Shown here piece by piece: positions 6,240 to 64,000 of a DNA stretch of 64,000 nt (position 1 is its first letter; every line of letters starts with the position of its first letter). The notes under the pieces are model-generated. The model did no database searches. It worked only from the letters and a program-made list of their open reading frames with translations, and was not told the origin of the DNA. The stretch spans positions 496,001-560,000 of the forward strand of contig NIVC01000415.1 of assembly GCA_002269645.1 (NCBI GenBank). The letters are read 5' to 3'. A program made the translations under genes and the position numbers. This DNA is from Macrostomum lignano (lineage: Eukaryota).

Positions 6240-11042
<4,803 letters not shown>

Positions 11043-12085: not shown

Positions 12086-12934
12086 ATAGATTGCTGTTAA
12101 ATTATTGGCGTCTAAAACTCGTGGAAATTTCCCCAAATGGACCGGCTCCTTAGGTTGGCTTCAGTAATCCAACTTTTATTCTGATTCTTATAAGTCCATT
12201 TGTATAATCTCCACAGCCTTAATATTGTTCTTGAATAAAGTCAAAATTTGCATACAAAATAGTTTTGATGTTTATTTCTCTATATATATTTATATCTTGT
12301 TACTAAAGCCTGCTAGCGATTGCTTTTCGTTTATAATTTAATAATTGAACACAGTTCATATGTAAAGCAATGTTTTGCTCATCAGAATCGATCCGTGTCC
12401 ACTTTGCTTTCACACTTATAGTTTGTTTGCCTTTCTCTGCTTAAAGGTCAGTTTTGCGGGTTGCAAAAAAAGCAATTGTCTATTTATCGCAAGCAAGCAT
12501 TATTAGAACATTTGTCTGATAATATTCAATATGCACTACTTACTACAGACACAAACTAGTAGCCTCTTGCTCATCTGTTTAACTTTTTTTTCAAATTCCA
12601 CCGTTCATTAAGTATCTAGTTTAGCAAAAAATAGTCTTCAACTTGTGCTCAACACTGAACATAATACTTCAGTGTATGCTTGGCGTGAAAAGGCCTATCT
12701 ATCTGTGTGTTTTTCGAAATTTATTATTGCCTATTTTTGTGCTTTTTTGCGCTTTGATTGATAGCGGAAGCTTATATTAATCTTTAGGCACGCTTTCACC
12801 CTTGACAAGTCTGAAGTACCGGCTAGACAGTTAGGTAAAAGCCACTGGTAAACAGTGCTCAGCTTGTCTCTTGAACAACCCTCAACTCACTCTTCCCTTA
12901 AGGGAATTTAAAGCCTTAAATACAGCCCTAACAA

Positions 12935-14722
12935 TCAGCAATTAAACAGCCCTAACAATTGCCATTAAACAGCCCTAACAATTGCCATTAAACAGCCCTA
13001 GCAATCGCCATTAAACAGCCCTAACAATTGCCATTAAACAGCCCTAACAATTGCCATTAAACAGCCCTAACAATCGCCAATAAACAGCCCTAACAATTGC
13101 TATTAAACAGCCCTAACAATTGCCATTAAACAGCCCTAACAATCGCAATTAAACAGCCCTAACAATTGCCATTAAACAGCCCTAACAATTGCCATTAAAC
13201 AGCCCTAGCAATCGCCATTAAACAGCCCTAGCAATCGCCATTAAACAGCCCTAACAATTGCCATTAAACAGCCCTAACAATTGCCATTAAACAGCCCTAA
13301 CAATCGCCAATAAACAGCCCTAACAATTGCTATTAAACAGCCCTAACAATTGCCATTAAACAGCCCTAACAATCGCAATTAAACAGCCCTAACAATTGCC
13401 ATTAAACAGCCCTAACAATTGCCATTAAACAGCCCTAGCAATCGCCATTAAACAGCCCTAACAATTGCCATTAAACAGCCCTAACAATTGCCATTAAACA
13501 GCCCTAACAATCGCCAATTAAAGGGCTCTAACAATGGCTATTAAACAGCCCTAACAATTGCCATTAAACAGCCCTAACAATCGCAATTAAACAGCCCTAA
13601 CAATTGCCATTAAACAGCCCTAACAATTGCCATTAAACAGCCCTAACAATCGCCATTAAACAGCCCTAACAATTGCCATTAAACAGCCCTAACAATTGCC
13701 ATTAAACAGCCCTAACAATCGCCAATTAAAGGGCTCTAACAATGGCTATTAAACAGCCCTAACAATTGCCATTAAACAGCCCTAACAATCGCAATTAAAC
13801 AGCCCTAACAATTGCCATTAAACAGCCCTAACAATTGCCATTAAACAGCCCTAGCAATCGCCATTAAACAGCCCTAGCAATCGCCATTAAACAGCCCTAA
13901 CAATTGCCATTAAACAGACCTAGCAATCGCAATTAAACAGCCCTAACAATCGCCAATAAACACCCCTAACAATTGCCATTAAACAGACCTAGCAATCGCA
14001 ATTAAACAGCCCTAACAATCGCCAATAAACAGCCCTAACAATCGCCATTAAACAGCCCTAGCAATCGCAATTAAACAGCCCTAACAATCGCCAATAAACA
14101 GCCCTAACAATCGCCATTAAACAGCCCTAACAATCGCCATTAAACAGCCCTAGCAATCGCCATTAAACAGCCCTAGCAATCGCCATTAAACAGCCCTAAC
14201 AATCGCCATTAAACAGCCCTAACAATTGCCATTAAACAGCCCTAGCAATCGCCATTAAACAGCCCTAACAATTGCCATTAAACAGCCCTAACAATCGCCA
14301 ATAAACAGCCCTAACAATTGCCATTAAACAGCCCTAGCAATCGCCATTAAACAGCCCTAACAATCGCCATTAAACAGCCCTAACAATCGCCATTAAACAG
14401 CCCTAACAATCGCCATTAAACAGCCCTAACAATCGCCATTAAACAGCCCTAACAATCGCCATTAAACAGCCCTAACAATCGCCATTAAACAGCCCTAACA
14501 ATCGCCATTAAACAGCCCTAACAATCGCCATTAAACAGCCCTAACAATCGCCATTAAACAGCCCTAACAATCGCCATTAAACAGCCCTAGCAATCGCAAT
14601 TAAACAGCCCTAACAATCGCCATTAAACAGCCCTAACAATCGCCATTAAACAGCCCTAGCAATCGCCATTAAACAGCCCTAACAATCGCCATTAAACAGC
14701 CCTAACAATCGCCATTAAACAG
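12935..14722. repeat. 23-bp minisatellite
   Basis: Unit gccattaaacagccctaacaatt, ~1.8 kb. Confidence 0.95.
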
Positions 14723-16343
14723 CTGTTCCAAGTCGCACAATTCTTTAAATTTGCCTTAGTAATTTTGGTCGTTAAGCTACTTACAGTAGTAAATTATACA
14801 AGCTAGCTGTATTGGGTTTCATTGGCTTAGCACTCAAGTTTATTAATTTTAATTTAGTTTCTGTAGTACCCGCAGCCCATAAAATGCATAATTTCGCTTT
14901 GCCGTGCCCGCTGTCTAATTTACCTGTTACTGCAATTTACCTACTATTTACTAATTCTATTGTGTTTCATTAATTTTGCCTTTCTCCAACTGCAAGTGCT
15001 GAGAGCTCTGTAAATCTGATGATCTGAATGCTTTTTCTGCACTGTCGCTGCTTCTCCTCGTAGCTCGCCACTGAAATCGCTATATAAAGAGATTCGCTGT
15101 AATCTGTTAATTTGCAAATACGTGTATTTACGTATACATACTGCATATATGCGCAATGAACATAATAACTATTAATAGACCATAGCTTACTAGTTCTTTG
15201 GCATAATTAATGATACAATTTTTCAAACTTGCAATCTGCATCATCTATAAATACTTTTACTATTTATGTTTAGTAAATTTTTGTTGCATATAGCTGTTTT
15301 AATATTTAACAAGTTGATATATTTGCATAAACTTCAAGCTTGTAAACGCTAAGCTATGTCCTATAAATATAAACTGAAACAGTTAGTTCGCATATTTATT
15401 TAATAATTGCCACGATTCATAAGTTTAAAATCTATTAATAATTAATTTTATAGCTTTGCTTAATAATTTTCATATACTCATGGCCGGCAAGACAGACAGG
15501 CAGGCAGACAGGCAGGCAGACAAACATACAAACAATATCGGAACTGAATATTGCTTATCTACTCGTAATCTGTTCGAGAAACCAGATATAATTACATGTA
15601 AGTATATATAGCGCTCGCAGTTTGGGCTACCGTAAATGAAATACATGTACATATTAAGCAGTGTTCTGTCAAAATTAAACGCGTCCGGAGTGAGTCACAA
15701 AATCGTTATATCACAAAAAGCATTTTTAACTTATTCCTGTTTGCTGTTTTGTTCGACTCAATTATAACTAATTTTTAAAATACATTTAATTGCCAAGGTG
15801 AGTCCTGTCTCTGCTATGTGCAGAATACTCGTATCAGTTTAAGTTACAACATTTAATGCTCGTGCCGTCCCGTGCGCATGTTCAAATGTATGTGGTACAC
15901 GTTCCTCTACACAGTACGTGTCAGCGTGAATTAAAAACTGCCAATTCGCATTCTAGCCATCTCCATCACACACGTCGGGTCGATCATTTTGGACAACTGA
16001 AGTAAAAAATAAGCAATCAGTTACCCCTTGATTTTCTTATTACATAAGCTACATTTTTCATATCACAGTGCATATATTCTAGAGAACGCCTGCATGTGGG
16101 GGTGCATTGGGGTTTCGCACCATACATGTTTGAGAAATCCGATCTGCATGTAAGCGCATACAGTGGGTAAATTCAGGCGTAGAAAATTTATAAATATGCT
16201 CGTGCACCTGGATACCGTGTACGAGCTATATATAATACAAGCAGCAGCTTACACATACATACATTTACATACATGTATGTGCAAAAACTCAATGTGGCAC
16301 GTACGTCCACTGCAGTCGCCATTCACAGCTTCTCGCAAATAGC

Positions 16344-20409: not shown

Positions 20410-21985
20410 GGGAGTGCTTGGGGTGCTAATGCTAAAGAGTGCTTGTTATGATGCTAAAGAGAGTGCTTCGGGTGCTAAAGAGAGTGCTTGGGGCACTTAA
20501 GAGAGTGCTTTGGTGTTCTAAAGAGAGTGCTTCAGGTGCTAAAGAGAGTGCTTGGGACACTAAATATTGCTTGGGATGCTAAAGAGAGTGCTTGGAGTGT
20601 TAAAGAGAGTGCCTGGGGTGCTAAAGAGAGTGCCTGGGTGCTAAAGAGAGTGCTTGGAGTGCTAAAGAGAGTGCTTGGGATGCTAAAGAGAGAGCTTGGA
20701 GTGCTAAAGAGAGTGCTTGGAGTGCTAAAGAGAGTGCTTGAAGTGCTAAAGAGAGTGCTTGAAGTGCTAAAGAGAGTGCTTGGAGTGCTAAAGAGAGTGC
20801 TTGAAGTGCTAAAGAGAGTGCTTGAAGTGCTAAAAGAGAGTGCTTGGAGTGCTAAAGAGAGTGCTTGGAGTGCTAAAGAGAGTGCTTGGAGTGCTAAAGA
20901 GAGTGCTTGGAGTGCTAAAGAGAATGCTTGGAGTGCTAAAGAGAATGCTTGGAGTGCTAAAGAGAGTGCTTGGAGTGCTAAAGAGTGCTTGGGGTGCTAA
21001 AAGAGAGTGCTTGGAGTGCTAAAGAGTGCTTGGGGTGCTAAAAGAGAGTGCTTGGAGTGCTAAAGAGTGCTTGGGGTGCTAAAAGAGAGTGCTTGGAGTG
21101 CTAAAGAGTGCTTGGAGTGCTAAAGAGTGCTTGGGGTGCTAAAAGAGAGTGCTTGGAGTGCTAAAGAGTGCTTGGGGTGCTAAAAGAGAGTGCTTGGAGT
21201 GCTAAAGAGTGCTTGGGGTGCTAAAAGAGAGTGCTTGGAGTGCTAAAGAGTGCTTGGAGTGCTAAAGAGTGCTTGGGGTGCTAAAAGAGAGTGCTTGGAG
21301 TGCTAAAGAGTGCTTGGGGTGCTAAAAGAGAGTGCTTGGAGTGCTAAAGAGTGCTTGGAGTGCTAAAGAGTGCTTGGAGTGCTAAAGAGTGCTTGGAGTG
21401 CTAAAAGAGAGTGCTTGGGGTGCTAAAGAGAGTGCTTCGGTTTGCTAAAGAGAGTGCTAAAGAGAGAGCTTGGAGTGCTAAAGAGAGAGCTTGGAGTGCT
21501 AAAGAGATAGCTTGGAGTGCTAAAGAGTGCTTGGGGTGCTAAAAGAGAGTGCTTGGAGTGCTAAAGAGTGCTTGGAGTGCTAAAGAGAGTGCCTGGGGTG
21601 CTAAAGAGAGTGCTTGGAGTGCTAAAGAGAATGCTTGGAGTGCTAAAGAGATTGCTTGGAGTGCTAAAGAGAGTGCCTGGGGTGCTCGGCGAGGCCGCCG
21701 AGCTGCTAAAGGTTCTTGGGGTGCTAAAAGAGAGTGCTTGGAGTGCTAAAGAGAGTGCTTGGAGTGCTAAAGAGAGTGCTTGGAGTGCTAAAGAGAGTGC
21801 CTGGGGTGCTAAAGAGAGTGCTTGGAGTGCTAAAGAGAGTGCCTGGGGTGCTAAAGAGAGTGCTTGGAGTGCTAAAGAGAATGCTTGGAGTGCTAAAGAG
21901 AGTGCTTGGAGTGCTAAAGAGAGTGCCTGGGGTGCTCGGCGAGGCCGCCGAGCTGCTAAAGTTTTTGGGGTGCTAAAAGAGAGTG
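20410..21985. repeat. ~21-bp minisatellite ending ~100 bp upstream of XPB ATG
   Basis: Unit gagtgcttggagtgctaaaga with 19-22-bp variants. Confidence 0.95.
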
Positions 21986-22081
21986 ATTTGGGCGCCAGAG
22001 GGTTTGGTTTTTAATGAGAGTCAAAATTTTCAAATATTTTATTTTCATGCAAATTGTTTCAACGCCACTCGCACAGTAAAA

Positions 22082-25000
22082 ATGGGCGGTGACAAGCGTA
22101 AGAAAGCCGGAAAATCTAGCGGCGCCAATAAAGAGTCTTCAAGTTCTGGCCGACCGTCGAAGAAAGTCCGGATAGAAAAACCGGCAGCCAAAGACGATTC
22201 CGATGTGGATTATCAGGCGTCTGATTTTGAAGACGACGCGGCGACAGATGCCGCCGCCGAGGCCGCTGTGCCCGCCGCGGCTGCTAAAGGCGCGCCAGGC
22301 GCCGAGGCTGGCGCCGTCGAAATGGACGAATATGGCGCTAAAGACTACAGTAAATCGTTGACATTGAAAACCGATCACGAGTCCAGGCCATTGTGGGTAG
22401 CGCCTGATGGGCACATTTTCTTAGAAGCATTCAGTCCGGTCTACAAGCAGGCGCACGATTTTCTAATAGCAATCTCAGAGCCAGTCAGTAGGCCAGAGCT
22501 GATTCACGAGTATCGACTGACTTCTTACAGTCTGTACGCTGCTGTTAGTGTCGGTTTAGAAACTGACAATATTATTGAATACCTGCGGCGGCTGTGCAAA
22601 ACCTCTTTAGATCCCGGCATTGAGCAGTTCATTAGGATTTGTACGCAAAGCTACGCTAAGCTTAAATTAGTGCTAAAAGATGGCCGCTATTTTATTGAAA
22701 GCCAGCATTTGACAGTTGTGAAAACTGTACTATTGGATCCTGTAGTCATGGAGTGCCTGCTCAATCCTACTGAGTCTCAGTCAATGCTGGAGGCGGCTGT
22801 GGCAGCTGCACAGGTGAGACTGCGTGTGCTGTGGTTTTTTTCAAGGTTAGGAATCCCGATTAAAACGTCACCGTGATTCTAGCGACTCTGGGATGACTGT
22901 TGAGTCACGGGCGCATCGCGTGTGTTGTAAAATCACGAAAAAGAAAAAGTCGTCCAATAGTCTTTGTGTTAGCGTTTTAACTTTCTACCAAGCAACTCAA
23001 GTAGACTGAACTGTACTGTAGCACGCCTCAGGTACGACTCTACGGCACCAGAGTGAGTCACTTGCGTTGCCTTAAGAGTCGTTTCAGAGTTGCAGCCAAT
23101 CAAATTGACTCTTTGACGACGTTTTTTGGCGACTTGTTACCGTCACATCTCGTCGTTCTAGGGTCGGCAAGTTCCGGCTCGCGAGCCATATGCAGCCCGC
23201 AAAGCCTCTCTATCCGGCCCTCGGGTTCTTTGAAACCTCACAATAGCAGTCCCTCCCGCTCAAGGTTTTTGTCTCTTCTCTCCTCTTCCCTCCTGTTTCT
23301 CTCCATTCTTCAAATAAAAAAGTTTGTCGACCCCTGGTGTAGTCACTTCTGTCCTATTTTACCTTCAACACGACTCTAGGGGCGCCCAATAAACAAGGGA
23401 CAAAAATTATTTATCCAAATCCTATTTGCCTTGACACTGAAGCAATATGAATACAAAATATAAACTGCGCTATTATCCATTGCTTGTTACTATAAGAGCC
23501 TAAATAAAATAAATACCCATGAAAATGTGATTGACAGGGCCGCACTGTGCCAGCCGCAGCGGCTGAACAGCAGGCTGACTCAGCCGCCGCCGCCGCATCG
23601 ACAACCGACACTCCTAGCGACATCCTTGACCTATACGATCGGCTGGACCGAGAGGACGCCACCGCGGAGGACTTGGCCGCATCGGCCAGCCGAGTATCTC
23701 TAGAAGTGCAACAGAGCATGATTGAAGTGCTGCAGAAGCGCTGCACTGAACTGGATTATCCTCTGATGGCCGAGTACGACTTCCGTCAGGATACGAAGAA
23801 TCCGAATCTGTCTATAGATTTGAAGCCGCTAACTACACTGCGGCCGTATCAGGAGAGATCGTTGCATAAGATGTTCGGCAATGGCAGAGCTCGCAGCGGT
23901 GTCATTGTGCTGCCATGCGGAGCTGGTAAAACTTTAGTAGGCGTTACGGCCGCTTGCACTGTGCGTAAGCGATGCCTGGTGCTGTGCACTTCCGGCGTAG
24001 CCGTTGAACAATGGCGCAGCCAGTTCCGGCTCTGGTCGACTATCGAAGATTCTCAGATATGTCGATTCACCAGCGAGTCTAAAGAGCGACCGGGTAGCGC
24101 AGGGATTTGCATATCCACTTATTCTATGATTGCTCACAGCAGTAAGCGATCCTTTGAGGCTGAACAGGTGAGGATAATGAGCTTGCAGTTCATCAATCCA
24201 CCAGTAACCCACTTGCTACTGAGGACCCACTTCCGGTTAATAAACAGCAAATAATCTACTTCCGGTTTATAAATAGCTACTAACCCACCCGGTTAAATAG
24301 CTACTAACCCACTTCCGGTTAAATAGCTACTAACCCACTTCCGGTTAATAAACAGTTAATAATTTACTTCCGGTTTATAAATAGCTACTAACCCACCCGG
24401 TTAAATAGCTACTAACCCACTTCCGGTCAATAAACTGCTAATAATCCACTTTCGGTCAATAAAAAGCTAATAATCCACTTCCGTTTCATAAAGTGCTAAT
24501 ATCTCCACTTCCGGTTAGTAAGCTACTTATATTTTCACTTCCGGTTAGTAAACTGCTTCTAACTCATTTCCAGTTCCCTTAACCAACTGCGAATAATCCA
24601 CTTCCGGTTATTTCAATATTCCCAATATCAATTGTTTAAAAAGCCACTGTTCTATCTCATTTCCGGTATATTGCACTATGCACTAGTAACAGGCTTTACA
24701 ACTATTGGCATTATAATTAGAATATATTCAATTCTTACAATCTCCTTACCACCCATAGGTTATGTTCTGGCTTCGCGACCAAGAATGGGGCCTAATGGTG
24801 CTAGACGAGGTGCACACAATCCCGGCCAAGATGTTTCGGCGAGTGCTAACCATAGTACGCTCGCACTGCAAGCTGGGCCTGACAGCCACTTTAGTACGCG
24901 AGGATGACAAAATCGCGGATTTGAACTTTCTAATTGGACCGAAGCTGTACGAGGCTAATTGGTTAGAGTTGCAGCGCGGTGGCTACATTGCCAGGGTTCA

Positions 25001-26478
25001 ATGCGCCGAGGTCTGGTGCCCAATGACGCCAGAGTTTTATCGGGAATATTGCAGCCAGAAATCCTGGGCTAGGCGTACACTGTTGTATCAGATGAATCCC
25101 AATAAGTTTCGCGTCTGTCAGTTTCTAATTAACTATCACGCTAGACGCGAAGATAAAATCATCGTATTCTCTGACAACGTGTTCGCTCTGAAGTACTACG
25201 CCAACGCTTTGAATAAGCCGTATTTGTACGGGCCGACTTCTCAAACTGAGAGAATGTACGTGTTGAAAAACTTTCAAAACAATCCCCAAGTGAATACGAT
25301 TTTCGTATCCAAGGTGGCGGATAATAGCTTCGATTTGCCTGAGGCCAACGTGCTGATCCAGATCACCAGTCACGGCGGCTCCCGGCGCCAGGAGGCCCAG
25401 CGTCTTGGCCGGATTCTTCGGGCCAAGCGCGGCACCGGGCCGGGCGACGAGTACAACGCGTACTATTATAGCTTGGTGTCGCAGGACACGGCTGAGATGT
25501 ACTTTGCCGAGAAGAGGCAGCGGTTTCTGGTTAATCAGGTTCGTTTCAGACCGATATTTGGAATTCCATCTATTAGTGACGATTTGTTGATGGGGAATTT
25601 CATCTATTAGTGACGACTTATCAATGGGGAATTCCATCTATTAGTGACGACTTATCAATGGGGAATTCCATCGATTAGTGACGATTTGTTGATGTGGAAT
25701 TCCATCGATTAGTGACGGTTTGTTGAGGGGGAATTCCATCTATTAGTGACGATTTGTTGAGGGGGAATTCAATTCCATCGATTAGTGACGATTTGTTGAT
25801 GTGGAATTCCATCGATTAGTGACGGTTTGTTGAGGGGGAATTCCATCTATTAGTGACGATTTGTTGAGGGGGAATTCCATCTATTAGTGACGATTTGTCA
25901 ATGGGGAATTCCATCTATTAGTGACGATTTGTCAATGGGGAATTCCATCTATTAGTGACGATTTGTTGAGGGGGAATTCAATTCCATCGATTAGTGACGA
26001 TTTGTTGATGGGGAATTCTATCGATGAGTGACGATTTGTTGAGTGGGGAATTCTATCGACGAGTGACGATTTGTTGATGTGGAATTCCATCGATTAGTGA
26101 CGATTTGTTTGCAGCACCTTACCGCCGCTCCCTCCCGCCCAGGGCTACGCATTCAAAGTGGTCACCAGGCTGCCCGGCATGGAGTCCGAGGAGGGCCTCG
26201 GCCTGTCAACCAAGGAGTCGCAGCTGCAGCTGCTCCAGCAGGTGCTGGCCACCTCCGAGTCGGACGCTCGCGACGAGGAGGAGCCCGGCCAGACGGCTTC
26301 GTCCGGCGGCGGCGCAATGAAGAAAGTCCAATCGGCGCCCGCATTCCAGCGCCGCTCGGCCACAATGGCCAGCCTGTCCGGCGCGGACGAGACCGTGTAC
26401 ACCGAGTTCCGCTCGGGACAGTCGGCCGCCAAGCGGTTGCAGGAGCGGCACCCGCTGTTTAGGAAGTTTAAACGTTGA
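22082..26478 (+). CDS. ERCC3: TFIIH helicase/translocase XPB (exons 22082-22813, 23538-24167, 24759-25538, 26143-26478; ~825 aa)
   Basis: [45 protein letters not shown], Walker A PCGAGKT, DEVH, RED motif (LVREDD), [19 protein letters not shown]|GYAFKV, C-terminal HPLFRKF. All three introns are GT-AG, phase 0. Confidence 0.97.
24205..24665. repeat. Degenerate ~28-bp repeat with ACTTCCGG cores in XPB intron 2
   Basis: Nine exact acttccgg cores plus variants. Confidence 0.85.
25555..26110. repeat. ~35-bp minisatellite filling XPB intron 3
   Basis: Unit ggaattccatctattagtgacgatttgttgagggg; runs almost from donor to acceptor. Confidence 0.95.
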
Positions 26479-26600: not shown

Positions 26601-30836
<4,236 letters not shown>

Positions 30837-31124
30837 AATTGAATAACTATTCGGGTTGTATGAAACTCGAGGGCTGATGCCATTGATGAAGGACACGCCT
30901 TCTTTAAGGTGTATTTGCATATATCTTATCTTAATCTCAAGGTAATTCTTTAATAAACCCGTTTCCGTTTCGCCATCGTTCGTTCTGCTTTCGCATTTAT
31001 CAATATTTGTTAAACTTCTATAAAACTCTATTAAAAGCTGCAGCTATTTTTGATTATTTGTGCCTTTCAGTTTGTTGGACCAGTTAAAGTCAGGGGGCTT
31101 TGTGCACCCTTGCGCACTTCAAGC

Positions 31125-31716
31125 GGGTCTACGACGCTTGCCTGCCGACGTTTGCCTGCGGGATGTTTGCCTGCGGGATGTTTGCCTGCGGGACGTTTGC
31201 CTGCAGGACGTTTGCCTGTGGGATGTTTGCCTGTGGGATGTTTGCCAGCCGACGTTTGCCAGACGACGTTTACCAGCGGGACATTTGCAGGCGGCAATTG
31301 GTTAAAGAAGTAATGCCCTCTCTAGGCTTACATGTACTTGCATTTGAAAACTGTCGGCACAGCACTAATCTAATTTCACCTCGCTCCCTACTACTGCTAT
31401 TAAATATATACAGGTTACTAACAAACTACTGTTCAGGCTTATTGAAGTTATTGCTCTTGTCTGCCTAAAAAGAAAGGTAAATTAAAAATACAAAATAGGA
31501 GTTTCCATCGTCATAGTTGATGTCTATGTATGCCATGGAATGGCCTTTTCCATCTCATGTGGCCAAACAGGCTAAATGGGAAAAGACTGAGACATCCATA
31601 ATGGTATTGGCTTAGTCTCGCATATATATACTTAACTCAAAAGCCAAACTCTGCTTAACGGAGTTTGGCCATGACAGCGTGCACTTGACAAGCTGCACTG
31701 GAATTAATTCGCTTAC
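31125..31716. mobile_element. Duplicated left half of the 34155-35160 MITE
   Basis: Identical to 34155-34746; truncated at the duplication junction. Confidence 0.85.
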
Positions 31717-31923
31717 GACGAGGAGGAGCCCGGCCAGACGGCTTCGTCCGGCGGCGGCGCAATGAAGAAAGTCCAATCGGCGCCCGCATTCCAGCGCCGC
31801 TCGGCCACAATGGCCAGCCTGTCCGGCGCGGACGAGACCGTGTACACCGAGTTCCGCTCGGGACAGTCGGCCGCCAAGCGGTTGCAGGAGCGGCACCCGC
31901 TGTTTAGGAAGTTTAAACGTTGA
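31717..31923 (+). pseudogene. ERCC3: Duplicated 3' fragment of XPB last exon
   Basis: Copy of 26272-26478 (DEEEPGQ...HPLFRKFKR*), with an in-frame TAA three codons upstream and no acceptor at the junction. Confidence 0.8.
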
Positions 31924-32045
31924 TTGATTTGCTGACAATGAGTTGAAATTCAATAATAGCATCCTGCCTACTTGTAGTAGTTAAATAAGTCTGACTGACC
32001 TTGTTTATTTAAGATGCTTTCACAACTAATTTATTTTTTATATGA

Positions 32046-33866
<1,821 letters not shown>

Positions 33867-37359: not shown

Positions 37360-38515
<1,156 letters not shown>

Positions 38516-46837: not shown

Positions 46838-47580
46838 CAGTGCTTGAGATTGAGTCACCCAGCTGTCAGTTACCGAGGTACCTGCTTCCGAATCAGTGCT
46901 TGAGATTGAGTCACCCAGCTGTCAATTACCGAGGTACCTGCTTCCGAATCAGTGCTTGAGATTGAGTCACCGAGCTGTCAATTACCGAGGTACCTGCTTC
47001 CGAATCAGTGCTTGAGATTGAGTCACCCAGCTGTCAATTACCGAGGTACCTGCTTCCGAATCAGTGCTTGAGATTGAGTCACCGAGCTGTCAATTACCGA
47101 GGTACCTGCTTCCGAATCAGTGCTTGAGATTGAGTCACCCAGCTGTCAATTACCGAGGTACCTGCTTCCGAATCAGTGCTTGAGATTGAGTCACCCAGCT
47201 GTCAATTACCGAGGTACCTGCTTCCGAATCAGTGCTTGAGATTGAGTCACCCAGCTGTCAATTACCGAGGTACCTGCTTCCGAATCAGTGCTTGAGATTG
47301 AGTCACCCAGCTGTCAATTACCGAGGTACCTGCTTCCGAATCAGTGCTTGAGATTGAGTCACCGAGCTGTCAATTACCGAGGTACCTGCTTCCGAATCAG
47401 TGCTTGAGATTGAGTCACCGAGCTGTCAATTACTGAGGTACCTGCTTCCGAATCAGTGCTTGAGATTGAGTCACCGAGCTGTCAATTACCGAGATACCTG
47501 TTTCCGAATCGGTGCTTAAGATTTCTTCCGAGCTGTCAATTACTGAGGTACCCATGCTTTCGAATGAATCAGTGCTTGAG
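46838..47580. repeat. 56-bp minisatellite overlapping the Syt7 stop codon
   Basis: Unit cagtgcttgagattgagtcacccagctgtcaattaccgaggtacctgcttccgaat. Confidence 0.93.
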
Positions 47581-49363
47581 AGTGTGCCAACGAGCCACCT
47601 GTTGTCTCGGCTTGCTCAGCACCTCAGTCCAGTGAGCCGTCTCGCTGGGACAGGATCTGGTACCTAATCTAATCCTGCCAATAGTTTCAGAGCCAAGAAA
47701 GTCTTTGTCCTTAACCACCAGTTCAAGATGATACTCGTGCACTTTGTCAGCAGGCACGCCGAAGGTAAAGGACTCGTTCCACTGGGGCGAGAGCGAGCGA
47801 CGCACTACGGTGCTCCTTCGTCGCTGGCAAACTCTTCTAGTCTTGCTGTGCACCAGCTTGGCCACGCAATAAGGATCGGAGGTCCGACTTAGATCCATCG
47901 CTTTGAGATCCTTTGCCCGCATCAGCACCAGATTGAGCTGATTGGAATGCGGATTATAGCTCAACGCTAGCAGCAGTTCGCCAACGAATCCGCGAGTCTT
48001 CCGGTTTGGCTGCAGATTGCGCCAAAGAGTCAGCGATCGGCGAGCACCGTCGACTGTGTGCAGAAACACCAACGGGAACTGCGCATCCCCGATGGGGTCG
48101 TCACGACTGAACCTGTCGTAGTCCAGCACCTGGATTAGCAGAGTCCGATCTAGCAGGCGTTCGCCGGGAAAATTCTCGAATAAAAACACTTCATTCCAGG
48201 TTGGATTCAGTTTTCGTGATCGTACTTTGGTTTGCACACGATTTGCTTTGTCAGGCAGGATGCTCACCTGTAATTTGTGGTTGAGAAAACATTGTCCTTT
48301 GTCACTTTAGCTACAGTCTGCATTCAGCCGTTCGGTCAATTATCTACCGGTATTAAGATCGACACAAAACAAGACGCTTCCTTTTCCATTCCTATGGAGT
48401 CTGCCTTCTTAAGACGGTCTTGGTTGTGCCGCTCTTTAACGATTCTATTACAAAGGCTCAGTTGTTCCATTTTACATTTCCCGCAAGGCTTAAGAAACCT
48501 ACAAAGAACCTAAAGAACAGCATGGCCTTTATTTTGGAATCTTCACTAATCTCTAAATTAGAGCATCTGATGTAAAGCCCCAAATATCCTGCTCAGAACC
48601 TTGCAAATCCTCGTACCTTGCAGTAGGGATCGGAAGTTCCCAACGGGAAGTCCATCGCTGGCAGGCCTCTGGCCTCGCAAATTTTCACGCTCAACTGCCT
48701 GCTGGTCCAATCGTAGGTCAACGAGAAACGAATCCGGCCCAATCCGTGGTCGCGACCTTCGTCGTTTAACTCGTCGCGGATTAGCGGATCATCTGCGTCA
48801 GCTTGGTTGGCATCCGGGTTGTCAGCGGCGGTGACGCCAACTGCACCGACAATGGGCGGAGCTGGATGGGCGCTGTCTGCAGAGCCAGACGCACCTGGAG
48901 GAGCAGCTGAAGCAGGAGCAGCAGCCGGTGGCTGAACCGGTTTGGTCTCAGAGGTGAGAGTTGACACCAGGCTCGGATTCGACAGGCCGACTCGAACACT
49001 TGATGGCCGACTCGGTGGTGGATGCAGCAAATGAGGCGACGGCGGCACCGAGGATGGCGGCGGCGGTCGCGGCGGCGGCGGCTGCTTTTGAGCGGTGGCG
49101 TCACTTGGACTGTCGCTGTCGCTGCTCGATGTGTCGCTGCTGCAGCATCTTGACTGACAGCTCAACGGTAAGCAGCTACAGATCGATCGCTTGGCTCGAT
49201 ACTGTTTTCTCCTAGTAACTGCTGTCGATCGGCGTCTTCTCCTCTTAAAACAGCAGCCAAGGCCGGCGTCGCACAGCGGCGTGTAAAACGACAGCACCAG
49301 AATGAAAAGTACAGCAACAAATGCGCAGAGCACGACAACCAGCACTGCTTGAGTTTGCTCCAT
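47569..49363 (-). CDS. SYT7: Synaptotagmin-7-like (exons 49363-48617, 48267-47569; ~481 aa)
   Basis: N-terminal TM (AVLVVVLCAFVAVLFILVLSF) followed by Cys residues and a basic patch. C2A: GRIRFSLTYD..AMDFPLGTSDPYCK|VSILPDK..LNPTWNEVFLFENFP..VLDYDRFSRDDPIG. C2B: GELLLALSYNP..AMDLSRTSDPY..HWTEVLSKPRQQVARWHTLK. Phase-0 junction AAG|gtacga..acag|GTG. Confidence 0.92.
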
Positions 49364-50380: not shown

Positions 50381-51039
50381 TGAATATTATACATGTATAG
50401 TAACATGATGAACACTGTATAGGAACGTGGTTAACACTATAGCCATGTGCCACAATTTTTGTCAAGTCACGTTATATACACTTTATTGTTGCTAGAAAGA
50501 CACTCTAGTCACGTGATTTGCTCTCTAATCCATCGAGTCTTTGCCTCCCTACTCGAATGAAACTTGTGTCATTGTAACATGTAGAACTATTTTATCAATC
50601 AGTGAAAGTCAAGATACTCGTACCGGAGTCAGGATAGGGACGTTTGTCTTTGTAGTAGAAGTGCTTCCTCTGCTATCCATGCGGCGACATTCTATTTTTA
50701 GAATTTCCTGCTATGCAGCCTCTTGTTCGCCAAAGATATTTGAAGTAGCTCGTAGAAGAAGAGGAACACGAGTCGCGGTAGCATCCTCAAAAATTCGACT
50801 AAGCCTTTGATGACTTTCATTTGAGCCATTTTGCATTGGCGAAAGAGGCAAGACTGCATTTTGGCGCTAAACTTTGCATCTGTGTTAGATTGCTACTTTG
50901 ATTTTCGAATAAGCTTCCTTGCATCTCCACTGGTTTGCGCTGATGGGCCAAGTCTATAGTAACAGGAGATCCCATTATACATGCTGGCACTCCGACATCT
51001 CCTCATTCTGACGTCAATCAAACAGTTAGTAGATACAGC

Positions 51040-51975
51040 GCCACTCTCAACTCCCAGATTATGCCAGCGCCACTCTCAACTCCCAGATTATGCCAGCGCC
51101 CCTCTCAACTCCCAGATTATGCCAGCGCCACTCTCAACTCCCAGATTATGCCAGCGCCACTCTCAACTCCCAGATTATGCCAGCGCCCCTCTCAACTCCC
51201 AGATTATGCCAGCGCCACTCTCAACTCCCAGATTATGCCAGCGCCACTCTCAACTCCCAGATTATGCCAGCGCCACTCTCAACTCCCAGATTATGGCAGC
51301 GCTACTCTCAACTCCCAGATTATGGCAGCGCCACTCTCAACTCCCAGATTATGCCAGCGCCACTCTCAACTCCCAGATTATGCCAGAGCCACTCTCAACT
51401 CCCAGATTATGGCAGCGCCACTCTCAACTCCCAGATTATGGCAGCGCCACTCTCAACTCCCAGATTATGCCAGCGCTACTCTCAACTCCCAGATTATGGC
51501 AGCGCCACTCTCAACTCCCAGATTATGCCAGTGCCACTCTCAACTCCCAGATTATGGCAGCGCTACTCTCAACTCCCAGATTATGGCAGCGCCACTCTCA
51601 ACTCCCAGATTATGGCAGCGCCACTCTCAACTCCCAGATTATGGCAGCGCCACTCTCAACTCCCAGATTATGCCAGCGCCACTCTCAACTCCCAGATTAT
51701 GCCAGCGCCACTCTCAACTCCCAGATTATGCCAGCGTTACTCTCAACTCCCAGATTATGGCAGCGCCACTCTCAACTCCCAGATTATGCCAGCGCCACTC
51801 TCAACTCCCAGATTATGGCAGCGCCACTCTCAACTCCCAGATTATGCCAGCGCTACTCTCAACTCCCAGATTATGGCAGCGCCACTCTCAACTCCCAGAT
51901 TATGCCAGCGCCACTCTCAACTCCCAGATTATGGCAGCGCTACTCTCAACTCCCAGATTACGGCAGCGCCACATC
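51040..51975. repeat. 29-bp minisatellite
   Basis: Unit cagcgccactctcaactcccagattatgc. Confidence 0.97.
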
Positions 51976-52552: not shown

Positions 52553-53194
52553 TACGAGCGTAGATATATTAAGTTTCACGAAAGAACATTACGTACTGTT
52601 TATAATATGACTTCTAAAACTATAAAGTAGTTTCAAGTTGTCCTTCCGTGCTTCTTCTTTAGCTTTCCCGATCTTATTTATCAAAGGATGGCTTTTTTCT
52701 AATTTGCTTGATTAAAAGAAGAAAATGGTGGCCTTTAGTGAACCGAAATTTCTAGACTAGGCTGAAGACGAAAAGAAGGACAAAAGTTAATTATTTCTTC
52801 AGTAGCGTTCGGGATAGACGGCTTGCAGGTTACAAAGGTTACAAAGGAGGCACGGAAGCGGTGGCGGCTTGCTCTGAAATGAGCCTAGGATTTGCAGAGT
52901 AAGCCCCGGTGTTTACTTTGGGCATGCAGGAAATTTCAATTGCTTTGATTGGGCAATCTTGAGAAATTGCAACAGACTTCTCCATCCTGCTCAGACTCAA
53001 AGCTGTTTGTTTTAAAAAAACTGAACTGAAAAAATCTAAATATCTAAAAATTTAAGAAAAATTGAACCTTATTGCACTACTTCTGTAGTCAAATAAGTAG
53101 AATGGTAAGCTTTTTATAACTCCTCCAACAAACTGATTTCCTAGAACGTTTTAGATCACAAGCGCAGACGCAGTGGGTGGGGGAGGATGGGGTG

Positions 53195-54140
53195 GAATCA
53201 TTCGGAGCGAATGGGTTGGGGTGGAATCATTAGGAGCGGATGGGTTGTGGTGGAATCATTAGGAGCGGATGGGTTGTGGTGGAATCATTAGGAGCGGATG
53301 GGTTGTGGTGGAATCATTAGGAGCGGATGGGTTGTGGTGGAATCATTAGGAGCGGATGGGTTGTGGTGGAATCATTAGGAGCGGATGGGTTGTGGTGGAA
53401 TCATTAGGAGCGGATGGGTTGGGGTGGAATCATTAGGAGCGGATGGGTTGTGGTGGAATCATTAGGAGCGGATGGGTTGTGGTGGAATCATTAGGAGCGG
53501 ATGGGTTGGGGTGGAATCATTAGGAGCGGATGGGTTGGGTTGGAATCATTAGGAGCGGATGGGTTGTGGTGGAATCATTAGGAGCGGATGGGTTGTGGTG
53601 GAATCATTAGGAGCGGATGGGTTGGGGTGGAATCATTAGGAGCGGATGGGTTGTGGTGGAATCATTAGGAGCGGATGGGTTGTGGTGGAATCATTAGGAG
53701 CGGATGGGTTGTGGTGGAATCATTAGGAGCGGATGGGTTGGGGTGGAATCATTAGGAGCGGATGGGTTGTGGTGGAATCATTAGGAGCGGATGGGTTGTG
53801 GTGGAATCATTAGGAGCGGATGGGTTGTGGTGGAATCATTAGGAGCGGATGGGTTGTGGTGGAATCATTAGGAGCGGATGGGTTGTGGTGGAATCATTAG
53901 GAGCGGATGGGTTGTGGTGGAATCATTAGGAGCGGATGGGTTGTGGTGGAATCATTAGGAGCGGATGGGTTGTGGTGGAATCATTAGGAGCGGATGGATT
54001 GGGGCGGAATCATTAGGAGCGGATGGATTGGGTTGGAATCATTAGGAGCGGATGGATTGGGTTGGAATCATTAGGAGCGGATGGGTTGTGGTGGAATCAT
54101 TAGGAGCGGATGGGTTGTGGTGGAATCATTAGGAGCGGAT
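53195..54140. repeat. 29-bp G-rich minisatellite
   Basis: Unit ggaatcattaggagcggatgggttgtggt. Confidence 0.97.
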
Positions 54141-55107
54141 AAGAGGGTTGGAGCTTTGGGCGGATGTGATGACGGATGAGAGGGCGGATATATGGGGAGG
54201 ATAAGGAAGCGGATAAGGGCAGTTTAATTTCCACTCTCAGATACTGAAAGCCGTAAAATTATTCGATATTCAGAGTTTTATTATTTAAAAATCCCAAAAA
54301 ATTGTCACGTACAAGAATAATCTTAAGAATGCTTTTATCATTAGCTTCTCCATTGTCTATAGCGTTAGCTTGTTCGCCTCTTCAGAAACTCAAAATTGTA
54401 CAAGCAGAGGAGCATCTGCTAAATTTCTCAAGCACAAGAAGCGAATGGGACCACCGTGTAGGTAAAATTATCTATTGGTGACGTGTGTTTATTTCATATC
54501 GGCACACACAATACAAGAAGGGTTTGACCACATTCTCAGGTTTTGTATACAGATTTTATGCTACTCTTACGATAGATTTGAAGCAATTTGTATTGTAAAG
54601 TATTTAGTATACTCTATTGAAATATTTTGCTTTGCTTAATAAGCCTTTGATATTTCCATTGTATCCTTGCATAATTTATTTTGTTTAAATTTAGATGCTC
54701 ACTATTTAAAAATAAGTCTCATCTCTACCTGATCTCCTCTCTACCCCCCTGGTCTCATCTCTACCTGATCTCCTCTCTACTCCCTGTTCTCATCTCTACT
54801 CTCTCCATCTTCTCCCTGATCTCATCTCTACTCTCCCCATCTCTCCCTGTTCTCATCTCTACTCTCCCCATCTCTCCCTGGTCTCTCTTCCTATCTCCTC
54901 CCTATCGGTCTAATTTATATCTCTTTGAGCTCGCCAATTTACAGCGCAACATTTCGATAGCGAACAGTTTATTAATTTTTGTGAGGAAGAGAGAGAGAGC
55001 ATTAGGAAGTTAATTTTACTAGCCTAGCTGTACGAGTAACTTATCCAAAAAGTTAACTCTCTTCAACAAGCGATGAAGATGACTCTCTGATTTTGCGTTG
55101 TCGATTT

Positions 55108-57439
55108 TTACAACTCTTGCTTGGCGTCGGTGTCTTCCTCTGACTTCACCTCCCCTTCATCGTCTGTTTTATCCGACTTCTCCTCTTCATCTTTGGTCTT
55201 GTCAGAATCCTCGTTGTTTCCAGGCTCATTTGGCTCTTTGAAGTCGTTAATTCCCTGAAATTTGCATTAGATTTGTTCAATACAGTTTAAAACAAATCTT
55301 AAGAAGTCTAATAGCTACGGCTGTTCAGTCCAAGGACTGGGGGTCACCACACACACCCTCAATTACCCCAGCTAAGTGAACTGAAGCAATGCAGAAAGAA
55401 GTGTCTTGGTCAAAGAAATTTTTCCGAGAGGGTCGAGAATCGAACCCCCGACCGTACAGTCGTGAGTCCGACGCTCTAACCGCTAGGCTACAACCCCTAC
55501 CAAGGATGTCTAAAAGAAACGTATATATACATAAGTTGTCCTTCCTTGCAGTAAAAGTTATGATACGATATACTCGTAGTTAAGAACGCTCACCGGTTGC
55601 TTTTTGCCGTTGGAGTCGAGGAAAATCTTTAAACTTTCCAGCTTACGATCAACTCCATAGTAATCAATGACGTCGTTAGAGTTCGCTGGGAACAGTTTCA
55701 GCGTTGGAAAGCTCATGACCTTCATGTCCGGCAGCTCGTTCTCTGAGCTGTCCATCTTGGCAATCATAATCGTGTCGTTGTGAGCATAGTCCTTAGCCAG
55801 CTGCTCCCACACCGGCGCCAGCTCCTTGCTGTGATCGCACCAGGGAGCGTAGAACATGACAAAGACTGTCTTGTTTTGGTCCATCGTCACTTCGTCGAAG
55901 TTCTTTCTAACTAGAACTTTCACCGGCTCCTTGTCCCAGTCGTCAGGCAGTTCCTGCGAAGCAAGATGCGGATCAATCTCATTGTCCAGCACGTCTTGGA
56001 CAAACTCGGTGACCCCTTCGGTTGTGACGCTTTCAAAAGTTGGTCGAAACTTGGACATGTTCCTGTCCAGGGCAATCACCCTGACTGACGGCGGATCCGA
56101 CGGTTTGACGCCGAAGAACTGCAAGATCTTCTCGTTGTCGCCATTGTCTACGTCAATGTAGATGAAAATCACGCGATCTTTGAAGCTCTTGGCTGACTCG
56201 CGGAACTGGCTGAACGAAGATTTGAACTGTTGCTCCTGCGACTTGCGGACAAACAGCAGCGCGTGTTTGGCGATGTCGCCACCAAAGATGTCCGGGGCGC
56301 TGTGGTGGGTGAACTCGACAACCAGCGGTAGTTTGTTTGCTTTAACAAACGCAGCGATACTGTCAACATCGAACGGCCCCTCATAACTTAAACGTTCTTT
56401 GTCAACATTTTTAAACATCAAGATGGTGTCCCTGGCAACTTGGTAGTGTGCCATCAGTTCTTCGTTGTCGGTCACACCACATGGTACTTCGTTAAGTCGA
56501 GTAAACGCAGTATCTTCTAGAAGCTTGGACATCTCTGTGAAGTTATCTTTTGAGAACAGACCTAACAGGGTGACACTATCAGCCGTTGTAAATTCTTCAG
56601 CCTCTTTGATAGTCGTAATAGCAGTGGTTGCCTGCTTCATCTTCGTTTCAATCCACGATACAACGGATTCACCAGTTTTTCCACCGTTGTAGCCAATGAC
56701 TAAGTCGCCTTTAAAGAACTTCAATGTTGGGTAACCTTTGACGTCGTACTTTTCGGCAAACTTCTTTTCAACAGAAGCGTCGACTCGAGCCAGTCTGACT
56801 GGGGAATTCTTTTCTTTGAGAATGAAGCCGGCCTTCACAAATTCTGGAGCAAACTCGCGGCTGTGAATGCACCACGGAGCGTCTGAAAGATGTGGAATAT
56901 GCATGTTTATCGAGTGGGATCTGAGGGATATTTCGTAGCTACATTGTAGTAGTTTATTAGATTATGGCAATTGAACGTGTTAGGTTTAATACATTTCATT
57001 CTACGCTCGTAGCTCATCAACTTGATCAGATGGACGTACTTGTACAAATAAAATACCATTCAATATTTATTTAACATTCATATATTTAATTTAAGTGATG
57101 TTCGAAACTTTTGACTATTTGTAAATTAAAAATCATGGTAAATATTACAATATCATAACAATATTATGGACCACAACATGTATATTATAATATGCACAAT
57201 AACTTACAAAACTTAATTAACATTGCTGGATATGACTTAATTACTTCTTCGTAGTTTTGATCCGTCAAAACCAAGATTCCAGCCTCTTCATGCTGTCGAT
57301 CAAATTCATTTAGTTCTTCCTTCTTCTCTTCCTTCGAATTCGCAGAGGGATCTCCACCAGTCGCTTTTGATTCATCCGAGGCGGTCAGAGCGACGACAGC
57401 CGCCGATGCAAACAATATTATGAAGTAAACAAGCCGCAT
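55108..57439 (-). CDS. PDI: Protein disulfide isomerase family protein, a-b-b'-a'-c architecture, both active sites CXXS (exons 57439-57208, 56882-55594, 55254-55108; ~555 aa)
   Basis: Signal peptide MRLVYFIILFASAAVVALTAS; ILVLTDQNY; F|YAPWCIHS; VARVDA; GYPTLKFF; LPLVVEF; FIYIDVD; WDKEPVKVLV; FYAPWCDHS; IAKMDS; SFPTLKLF; acidic tail ending KQEL*. Junctions T|gtaagt..tcag|AC (phase 1) and CCG|gtgagc..tcag|GGA (phase 0). Confidence 0.93.
55424..55498 (-). pseudogene. tRNA-like sequence (SINE head or tRNA pseudogene) in PDI intron 2
   Basis: Minus strand GGGGTTGTAGCCTAGCGGTTAGAGCG...GGGGGTTCGATTCTCGACCCT has A and B boxes, but the anticodon and T stems do not pair. Confidence 0.65.
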
Positions 57440-59790: not shown

Positions 59791-59974
59791 GTGAGATTGT
59801 TGATAACTGCAGCCTCGTCTGGGTTAGTGGACACTGTAGAATTAGTTTAGTTTGGAATCATAGGATAAAATTCATATATTGACGTTGGTGTTATAATAAT
59901 CATCTAAATAAGTTTAGGTTAACCAACTAATGAATTTAGGTCAACCAATCTAATTAGCTTAGCTTAGGTTAGCC

Positions 59975-60500
59975 ATCGAATGAGTTTAGGTTAAACTACC
60001 TAATGAGTTTAGGTTAAACTACCTAATGAGTTTAGGTTAAACTACCTAATGAGTTTAGGTTAAACTGTCTAATGAGTTTAGGTTACACTACCTAATGAGT
60101 TTAGGTTAAACTATCTAATGAGTTTAGGTTACACTACCTAATGAGTTTAGGTTAAAATGTCTAATGAGTTTAGGTTACACTACCTAATGAGTTTAGGTTA
60201 AACTATCTAATGAGTTTAGGTTACACTACCTAATGAGTTTAGGTTAAACTATCTAATGAGTTTAGGTTACACTACCTAATGAGTTTAGGTTACACTACCT
60301 AATGAGTTTAGGTTAAACTGTCTAATGAGTTTAGGTTACACTACCTAATGAGTTTAGGTTACACTACCTAATGAGTTTAGGTTACACTACCTAATGAGTT
60401 TAGGTTAAACTGTCTAATGAGTTTAGGTTACACTACCTAATGAGTTTGGTTAAACTGTCTAATGAGTTTAGGTTAAACTACCTAATGAGTTTAGGTTAAA
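59975..60500. repeat. 23-bp minisatellite in EXOC5 intron
   Basis: Unit ttaggttaaactacctaatgagt. Confidence 0.95.
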
Positions 60501-60508
60501 CTAGCAAT

Positions 60509-61375: not shown

Positions 61376-64000
<2,625 letters not shown>

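Follow-up and report, generated by a model that had tools for sequence, protein, structure and literature searches.

The 64,000-nucleotide stretch of Macrostomum lignano DNA analyzed here (contig NIVC01000415.1; hereafter the window) contains a gene for a full-length protein disulfide isomerase (PDI) in which both catalytic motifs are of the CXXS type. This CXXS protein is a fast-evolving, lineage-restricted paralogue of the canonical PDI of M. lignano itself. We consider it moderately probable that it is an endoplasmic reticulum (ER)-resident monothiol (CXXS/CXXS) PDI, which would not shuttle disulfides and would act through mixed disulfides. CXXS versions of PDI are a classic tool, by which isomerase and oxidase activities have been separated and clients have been trapped, and yeast Eug1p is, to our knowledge, the sole natural full-length double-CXXS PDI to have been studied. 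M. lignano has a transparent body and is amenable to RNAi, transgenesis and in situ hybridization; with a double-CXXS PDI in this animal, the purpose of a monothiol PDI could be tested directly. The advance is incremental, since the family, its chemistry and the yeast precedent were already known.

The gene lies on the minus strand, with its start codon at 57439-57437 and its stop codon at 55110-55108, which are exactly the limits (55108-57439) given to it in an earlier note on this DNA. That note also described an intact open reading frame. The frame is indeed intact, but it is not one continuous open reading frame, being split into three exons. The features are the following:

Exon 1, 57208-57439, minus strand: ATG, hydrophobic leader (aa 1-19), Lys/Glu-rich extension and start of domain a; its 3' end codes up to LIKF and the first base of Tyr78
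Lys76 codon AAG, 57214-57212, minus strand: in exon 1, takes the place of the buried Glu
Intron 1, 56883-57207, minus strand: phase 1, GTAAGT...TTTCAG, interrupts the Tyr codon of FYAPWC
Exon 2, 55594-56882, minus strand: remainder of domain a, b, b', x-linker and a'
Active site of domain a, 56860-56874, minus strand: TGG TGC ATT CAC AGC, W81 C82 I83 H84 S85
Lys146 codon AAA, 56677-56679, minus strand: Arg in 70/70 canonical PDIs aligned
Met420 codon ATG, 55855-55857, minus strand: stands for the buried Glu of domain a'
Active site of domain a', 55828-55842, minus strand: TGG TGC GAT CAC AGC, W425 C426 D427 H428 S429
Intron 2, 55255-55593, minus strand: phase 0, GTGAGC...TTTCAG
Exon 3, 55108-55254, minus strand: long disordered acidic/Lys-rich c tail, KQEL and stop TAA
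KQEL codons, 55122-55111, minus strand: C-terminus, directly before the stop TAA at 55110-55108
AATAAA polyadenylation-like signal, 54968-54973, minus strand: about 135 nt past the stop, a sequence match only

Both motifs had been read correctly, with slightly shifted positions: the a-domain motif, first placed at ~56872-56860, occupies 56874-56860, and the a' motif, first placed at ~55843-55829, occupies 55842-55828. A tRNA-like relic can also be recognized inside intron 2, at ~55425-55500; neither ARAGORN nor Rfam called a tRNA in this stretch.

The encoded protein follows the order a-b-b'-x-a'-c and contains three cysteines only (82, 212 and 426). Domain a reads FYAPWCIHS and domain a' reads FYAPWCDHS, and the two cis-Pro loops reported earlier were both found, GYPT (P129) and SFPT (P470). 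The a-b-b'-a'-c layout that had been proposed agrees with the Pfam domains, with the end-to-end alignment to human PDI and with the AlphaFold model. Pfam places Thioredoxin domains at 55-156 and in a', on either side of Thioredoxin_6 at 199-374. In a search of PDB sequences, human PDI/P4HB is matched from end to end (E 1e-132), the matches to PDILT (2e-56), PDIA3 (7e-49), yeast Pdi1 (1e-44) and ERp44 (2e-14) being weaker. The AlphaFold model contains four thioredoxin folds, with a mean pLDDT of 87 and a core mostly above 90; residues 21-43 at the N-terminal end (pLDDT below 50) and the C-terminal tail (512-555) are predicted to be disordered. The N-terminal Lys/Glu-rich extension (aa ~20-50) is missing from all relatives. 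The best Foldseek matches are structures of human PDI (TM up to 0.77), either free or as the beta-subunit of the collagen prolyl 4-hydroxylase C-P4H-II and of MTP. The protein is thus of the PDIA1/P4HB type, nearer to PDIA1 than to PDILT, PDIA3, PDIA4 or ERp44; in this family comparison, PDIA2 was represented by one unnamed sequence, P0142, taken as PDIA2-like. The features read from the sequence as ER-targeting are the hydrophobic leader (aa 1-19) and the C-terminal KQEL, which presumably fits the PROSITE ER-retention pattern. A literature search on KQEL and the KDEL receptor returned no relevant paper.

Such a pair of motifs is very unusual in this neighborhood. Among the 119 closest 90% clusters, all 118 complete relatives have CGHC in both domains; the remaining entry, the 119th, is truncated and shows a single CGHC. 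In an exhaustive HMMER search of 1.84 billion representatives, the CXXS protein is alone in its 50% cluster; no protein closer than the canonical PDIs was retrieved, nor any orthologue in another species. The description of the gene as lineage-specific thus holds, in the sense of an intact gene restricted to its lineage. A profile of the two active-site segments, with which other CXHS proteins were sought, returned 10 short fragments only and no useful match.

Among 149 diverse representatives, CXXS at both sites recurs in only one other a-b-b'-a' protein, P0195 from an ENA contig, which combines CGPS and CNIS with a KDEL end and whose nearest relatives are arthropod canonical PDIs. In two firefly proteins, P0133 and P0167, CXXS is confined to domain a (CKHS/CKYS), a' having C-x-x-C, and a few others among the 149 show different degenerate motifs; in two lone offshoots, P0160 and P0147, the motifs are wholly lost. 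P0195 and the firefly offshoots are 29-33% identical to the Macrostomum CXXS protein, and since canonical PDIs are the nearest relatives of each offshoot, ahead of both the Macrostomum protein and the other offshoots, they are independent and do not form a family. The earlier note had left room for the protein to group within an already described double-CXXS family; no such grouping was observed. The Macrostomum CXXS PDI is not a unique animal case, lone double- or half-CXXS PDIs being present in other animals too. P0160 was considered as an orthologue (common VFVMFY, LDSxGKK and long acidic tail) and rejected, with 36% identity to the CXXS protein versus 42% to a canonical PDI.

Several observations bear on the origin of the gene. 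The nearest proteins are canonical PDIs of the Macrostomum type (~49-51% identity). Intron 1 is common to the CXXS and canonical M. lignano PDI genes, with the same position, phase and GTTTT|GTAAGT donor, and the C-terminal phase-0 intron also corresponds, while the middle intron of the canonical gene is missing from the CXXS gene. The gene is therefore a duplicate made at the DNA level, not a retrocopy. Two one-residue insertions and the PCG cysteine are common only to the CXXS protein and the Macrostomum canonical PDIs. In addition, 9 of the 31 states fixed in the Macrostomum canonical clade and rare elsewhere are also found in the CXXS protein, compared with 35/556 (6%) for control clades, which were defined by identity. 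A neighbor-joining tree of 128 PDIs placed the CXXS protein among the long branches of P0160, P0147 and a Helobdella protein. This placement is attributed to long-branch attraction, because each of these long branches is nearer to canonical PDIs than to the CXXS protein or to the other long branches, and the origin was judged from the rare shared states and the gene structure instead of this tree.

The CXXS branch is indeed long, 2.4-3.8 times longer than the canonical one by three-taxon distances. The identity to the parent is 51% in domain a and 58% in a', whereas the parent and its scallop counterpart share 67% and 75%, respectively. Since the two proteins are ~50% diverged, synonymous sites must be saturated between the CXXS gene and the parental gene.

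The spliced product of 555 aa is identical to PAA83560.1 (P0121, BOX15_Mlig027687g1) of M. lignano, whose GenBank entry reads hypothetical protein. Literature searches with Macrostomum and disulfide isomerase, with the gene identifiers and with related SRA runs yielded no paper about this protein, which is deposited but unnamed and undescribed. PAA59556.1 and PAA81435.1, encoded by two more copies in the genome, share 99% identity with it, and both paralogous loci (L001 and L010) were compared with the copy in the window. In none of the three is the frame broken, and the two motifs are the same throughout, with AGC as the serine codon at both sites. A sequencing error is excluded because the same two motifs are carried by 3/3 genomic copies. 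The 39-aa Logan "members" of the 90% cluster were also considered as transcript contigs; these proved to be unrelated peptides, none of which maps to the window, and their membership is a clustering artefact. The GenBank annotation of the M. lignano assembly was built from transcript assemblies only (PMC5730564). The deposited model has the same splice junctions as those described above, which in a transcript-only annotation (PMC5730564) amounts to indirect evidence of transcription; the gene is real and, by this indirect evidence, transcribed.

Comparison of the three CXXS copies shows 4 synonymous and 4 nonsynonymous differences, besides a few in the introns. The resulting omega is ~0.27, with too few events to decide; when neutrality was assessed by a binomial estimate, p was ~0.07. 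P0129, the canonical PDI encoded in this genome, likewise has three copies, which differ from one another at 5-6 synonymous and 0 nonsynonymous sites. Because both genes are triplicated, the CXXS gene predates the genome multiplication of the sequenced line; the 4 nonsynonymous differences, against none in the canonical gene, indicate that it is under looser constraint than its parent. This excess over the parent gene, the long branch, the failure of the 1.84-billion-representative HMMER search to find an orthologue in other species and the presence of a fully canonical PDI in the same genome are what could be expected of a redundant recent duplicate drifting to loss, in which the CXXS motifs would be a functionless early stage of decay. 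We regard this explanation as highly improbable. The duplication is older than the genome multiplication, frames and motifs have stayed intact in three copies that diverged at synonymous and intronic sites, and the gene models are derived from transcripts. The pattern of conservation in the protein, with its predicted leader peptide and putative ER signal kept, argues in the same direction.

To examine this pattern, we took the 132 alignment columns in which 70 canonical PDIs show a conservation of 93% or more. At 28/132 of them the CXXS protein departs from the consensus, whereas canonical PDIs do so at a median of 2 and at most at 14; 104/132 highly conserved positions are thus kept, which again speaks against drift. 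The deviations are unevenly distributed: 17/46 in domain a, 4/10 in b, 2/24 in b', 0/6 in x and 5/44 in a'. In a', three of the five are E420M, G427D and C429S. Domain a has E76K, G83I and C85S among its non-conservative deviations, accompanied by R146K and K110R. The same three functionally linked positions are therefore altered in both domains, a coincidence hardly expected from decay. The buried Glu ahead of the motif is lost twice (Lys in a, Met in a'), and the a-domain Arg has become Lys146, at a position which we take to be that of R120 in human PDI, while Arg490 of a' is kept. The hallmarks of PDIA1 that are absent are thus the two CGHC sites, both buried Glu residues and the a-domain Arg. 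At the codon level, the parental TGC and GAG are replaced by AGC, AAG and ATG; as noted earlier, both serine codons are AGC, one step from TGC, and TGC is what the canonical parental gene has at both sites. Both catalytic domains still have their nucleophilic cysteine, Trp, His and cis-Pro loop, and b', the principal substrate-binding domain, is conserved about as in the canonical protein.

The second, resolving cysteine of PDI owes its deprotonation and tuning to the Glu before the motif and to the loop Arg, as established by PDI enzymology. Domain a' is almost unaltered except for three residues that govern this second cysteine, which suggests retuning and not neglect. Overall, the pattern of changes looks like retuning rather than decay. 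The parallel change of the two domains had been read earlier as a directed shift, and this reading gains from the loss of Glu at both sites, from the redox triad of a' and from the near-canonical b' and x. Several of the lone CXXS offshoots described above also have Lys at the buried-Glu position. Co-loss of the Glu proton relay is seen both in this protein and in other lone CXXS PDIs; it amounts to a natural experiment, in support of the role assigned to this residue.

The same distribution of changes could also be explained by a redox-inactive chaperone or structural subunit, in which b' and the PDI shape would be used and the two cysteines would be evolutionary leftovers. Possible models are a holdase of the PDILT/ERp27 kind or the beta-subunit of a prolyl 4-hydroxylase-like or MTP-like complex; the catalytic cysteines of PDI are dispensable in these subunit roles. 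It is indeed b' and x that are best conserved (2/24 and 0/6 deviations), the catalytic domains have evolved fastest (51 and 58% identity to the parent), and the closest structures include human PDI as a subunit of C-P4H-II and of MTP. The complete loss of motifs in P0160 and P0147 indicates, moreover, where other lone offshoots have gone. Yet the nucleophilic cysteines, Trp, His and cis-Pro loops have been kept twice despite ~50% divergence, and the changes of a' are nearly confined to the three residues governing the second cysteine. PDILT, the model for this explanation, has itself lost its N-terminal cysteines. A redox-inactive role is thus rather unlikely in our view.

A monothiol PDI would account for both the residues kept and those lost. 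The protein would enter the ER by its hydrophobic leader and be retrieved by KQEL. Cys82 and Cys426 could attack client disulfides, giving mixed disulfides. Lacking the resolving cysteine, the active sites would form no internal disulfide, so that oxidizing equivalents from Ero1 would not be relayed, and there would be no intramolecular escape route. The mixed disulfides would then be resolved by a client thiol, which amounts to isomerization, or by glutathione. Such a PDI would shuffle disulfides or hold its clients in long-lived covalent complexes, working beside the canonical CGHC PDI. Since the Glu relay and the a-domain Arg serve to activate the second cysteine, their loss agrees with the monothiol reading. 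Eug1p itself is a poor isomerase: it does not oxidize clients alone, its shuffling activity is weak and it depends on CXXC paralogues. It nevertheless provides a precedent, in that two CXXS sites cannot carry oxidizing equivalents and are suited to shuffling (PMC2195995). Points to be set against the monothiol reading are the departures of domain a at 17/46 conserved positions, the long branch, the looser constraint, the lack of an orthologue among the HMMER matches and the poor isomerase activity of Eug1p. Asp427, the second residue of the a' motif, could also raise the pKa of Cys426.

A covalent mechanism would equally be at work in ERp44-like thiol-mediated retention, in which partners with exposed cysteines would be captured as mixed disulfides and retrieved through KQEL, in order to control the secretion or assembly of oligomers. 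The CXXS sites, the KDEL-type end and the charged disordered N- and C-terminal tails, which are lineage-specific additions, would be compatible with such a role, and mechanistically it overlaps with the monothiol reading. However, the relation to ERp44 lies only in the shared fold (E 2e-14, a-b-b' only), and the architecture of ERp44, a single a domain with a regulatory tail, is not found. We hold this kind of retention to be very unlikely. As for client trapping, retention or a specialized secretory cell type in the case of the CXXS protein itself, these can at present only be conjectured.

A broader proposal may be formulated, to which we give little credence: the co-loss of the resolving cysteine and of the activating Glu in both domains might be a recurrent, selected animal route, as in yeast Eug1p, toward a dedicated monothiol PDI, by which a narrow range of clients would be bound in long-lived covalent complexes in specialized secretory cells (in Macrostomum, for example, adhesive, rhabdite, shell-gland or prostate cells). 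If this were true, the Macrostomum gene would be the first case in a genetically tractable animal, and P0195 and the firefly proteins would be independent replicates.

Among known systems, the closest is the canonical PDI of M. lignano (P0129; Mlig011389), with ~49% identity and the same domain order, fold and intron 1 position and phase; mammalian P4HB orthologues are 43-44% identical to the CXXS protein. The likeness to canonical PDI extends to FYAPWC, both cis-Pro loops, the DWDK x-linker, b', the leader and the KDEL-type C-terminus. In contrast to it, the CXXS protein has C-x-H-S twice, no buried Glu and Lys for the a-domain Arg, together with an N-terminal insertion of ~26 aa, a tail longer by ~30 aa and one intron fewer.

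PDILT, from vertebrate testis, is likewise a PDIA1-like a-b-b'-a' paralogue with non-canonical motifs and a restricted distribution. Its motifs, SKQS and SKKC, have lost the nucleophilic Cys and it is specific to vertebrates and to testis, whereas the CXXS protein keeps both N-terminal cysteines; the match to PDILT (5xf7; E 2e-56, TM-score 0.32-0.37) is far below that to PDIA1. ERp44, an ER protein, likewise has a CXXS thioredoxin fold (CRFS) and a KDEL-type signal, and it works via mixed disulfides. Its a-b-b' build includes a single active site and ends in a regulatory C-tail, whereas the CXXS protein has a second catalytic domain, a', and the similarity is limited to residues 51-379 of the latter.

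The functional comparison with Eug1p of Saccharomyces cerevisiae, put forward in the earlier note, is apt: both are full-length PDI paralogues, of the ER in yeast and presumably so in M. lignano, with two CXXS sites, found beside a canonical CXXC PDI (PMC2195995). The motifs are CLHS and CIHS in Eug1p, CIHS and CDHS in the CXXS protein, with His at position 3 in both, and neither protein can form an internal active-site disulfide. Common descent with fungal EUG1 is another matter: the likeness is one of convergence only, since it was from the canonical PDI of the flatworm that the gene arose, the separate origin being judged from this derivation and from the match to yeast Pdi1 (E 1e-44), far weaker than that to animal PDIA1 (E 1e-132). 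The Macrostomum protein thus stands outside the Eug1p, ERp44 and PDILT families, and is a convergent animal instance of a double-CXXS PDI.

The PDI gene has ordinary genes as neighbours in the window, recognized as the following exon-sized ORFs:

8266-9057, plus strand, exon-sized ORF of a protein kinase
~21983-25610, plus strand, exon-sized ORFs of an ERCC3/XPB helicase
47569-49363, minus strand, exon-sized ORF of a C2-domain protein

Dense minisatellite arrays are found throughout the window:

12922-14723, minisatellite array
20452-21936, minisatellite array
26624-33866, 7.2-kb minisatellite array with a 15/45-bp unit
37362-38515, minisatellite array
51036-51972, minisatellite array
53191-54140, minisatellite array
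59902-60503, minisatellite array

Two of the arrays, of the 29-bp type, lie a short way downstream of the PDI gene, and the arrays flanking this gene are also present, with 92-97% identity, in L001, one of the two paralogous M. lignano loci that carry further copies of it. At L001 as well as at L010, the PDI gene has a Sec10/EXOC5 gene upstream of it. The homology shared by the window and L001 ends at ~60239, short of a retroelement pol fragment:

61690-63909, minus strand, 739-aa ORF encoding reverse transcriptase and RNase H domains

Another feature lies inside the PDI gene itself:

~55425-55500, minus strand, tRNA-like stretch in intron 2, bearing motifs that resemble an A box and a B box

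These motifs read GTAGCCTAGCGGTTAGAGCG ... GGTTCGATTCTCG, and the stretch occurs only once in the window. Neither ARAGORN nor Rfam returned a tRNA call for it, and the intron containing it is nearly identical in both paralogous copies. This stretch probably represents either the relic of a tRNA-derived SINE or a tRNA gene that has decayed.

At the protein level, the 90% cluster of the 555-aa PDI (P0001) in the protein collection also groups six 39-aa Logan peptides. These neither show similarity to the PDI nor map to the window, and their membership was thus rejected as a clustering artefact of the database.

Outside the window, public proteins from other animals or other eukaryotes include lone PDIA1-like offshoots, unnamed and with degenerate active sites (P0195, P0133, P0167, P0278, P0160 and P0147). 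P0195, of arthropod affinity, carries CGPS and CNIS active sites, and the firefly proteins (P0133 and P0167) have CKHS or CKYS in domain a, together with a C-x-x-C motif in a'. Several of these offshoots, like the M. lignano CXXS PDI, have a Lys in place of the buried Glu that precedes the active-site motif, pointing to a possible recurrent co-substitution.
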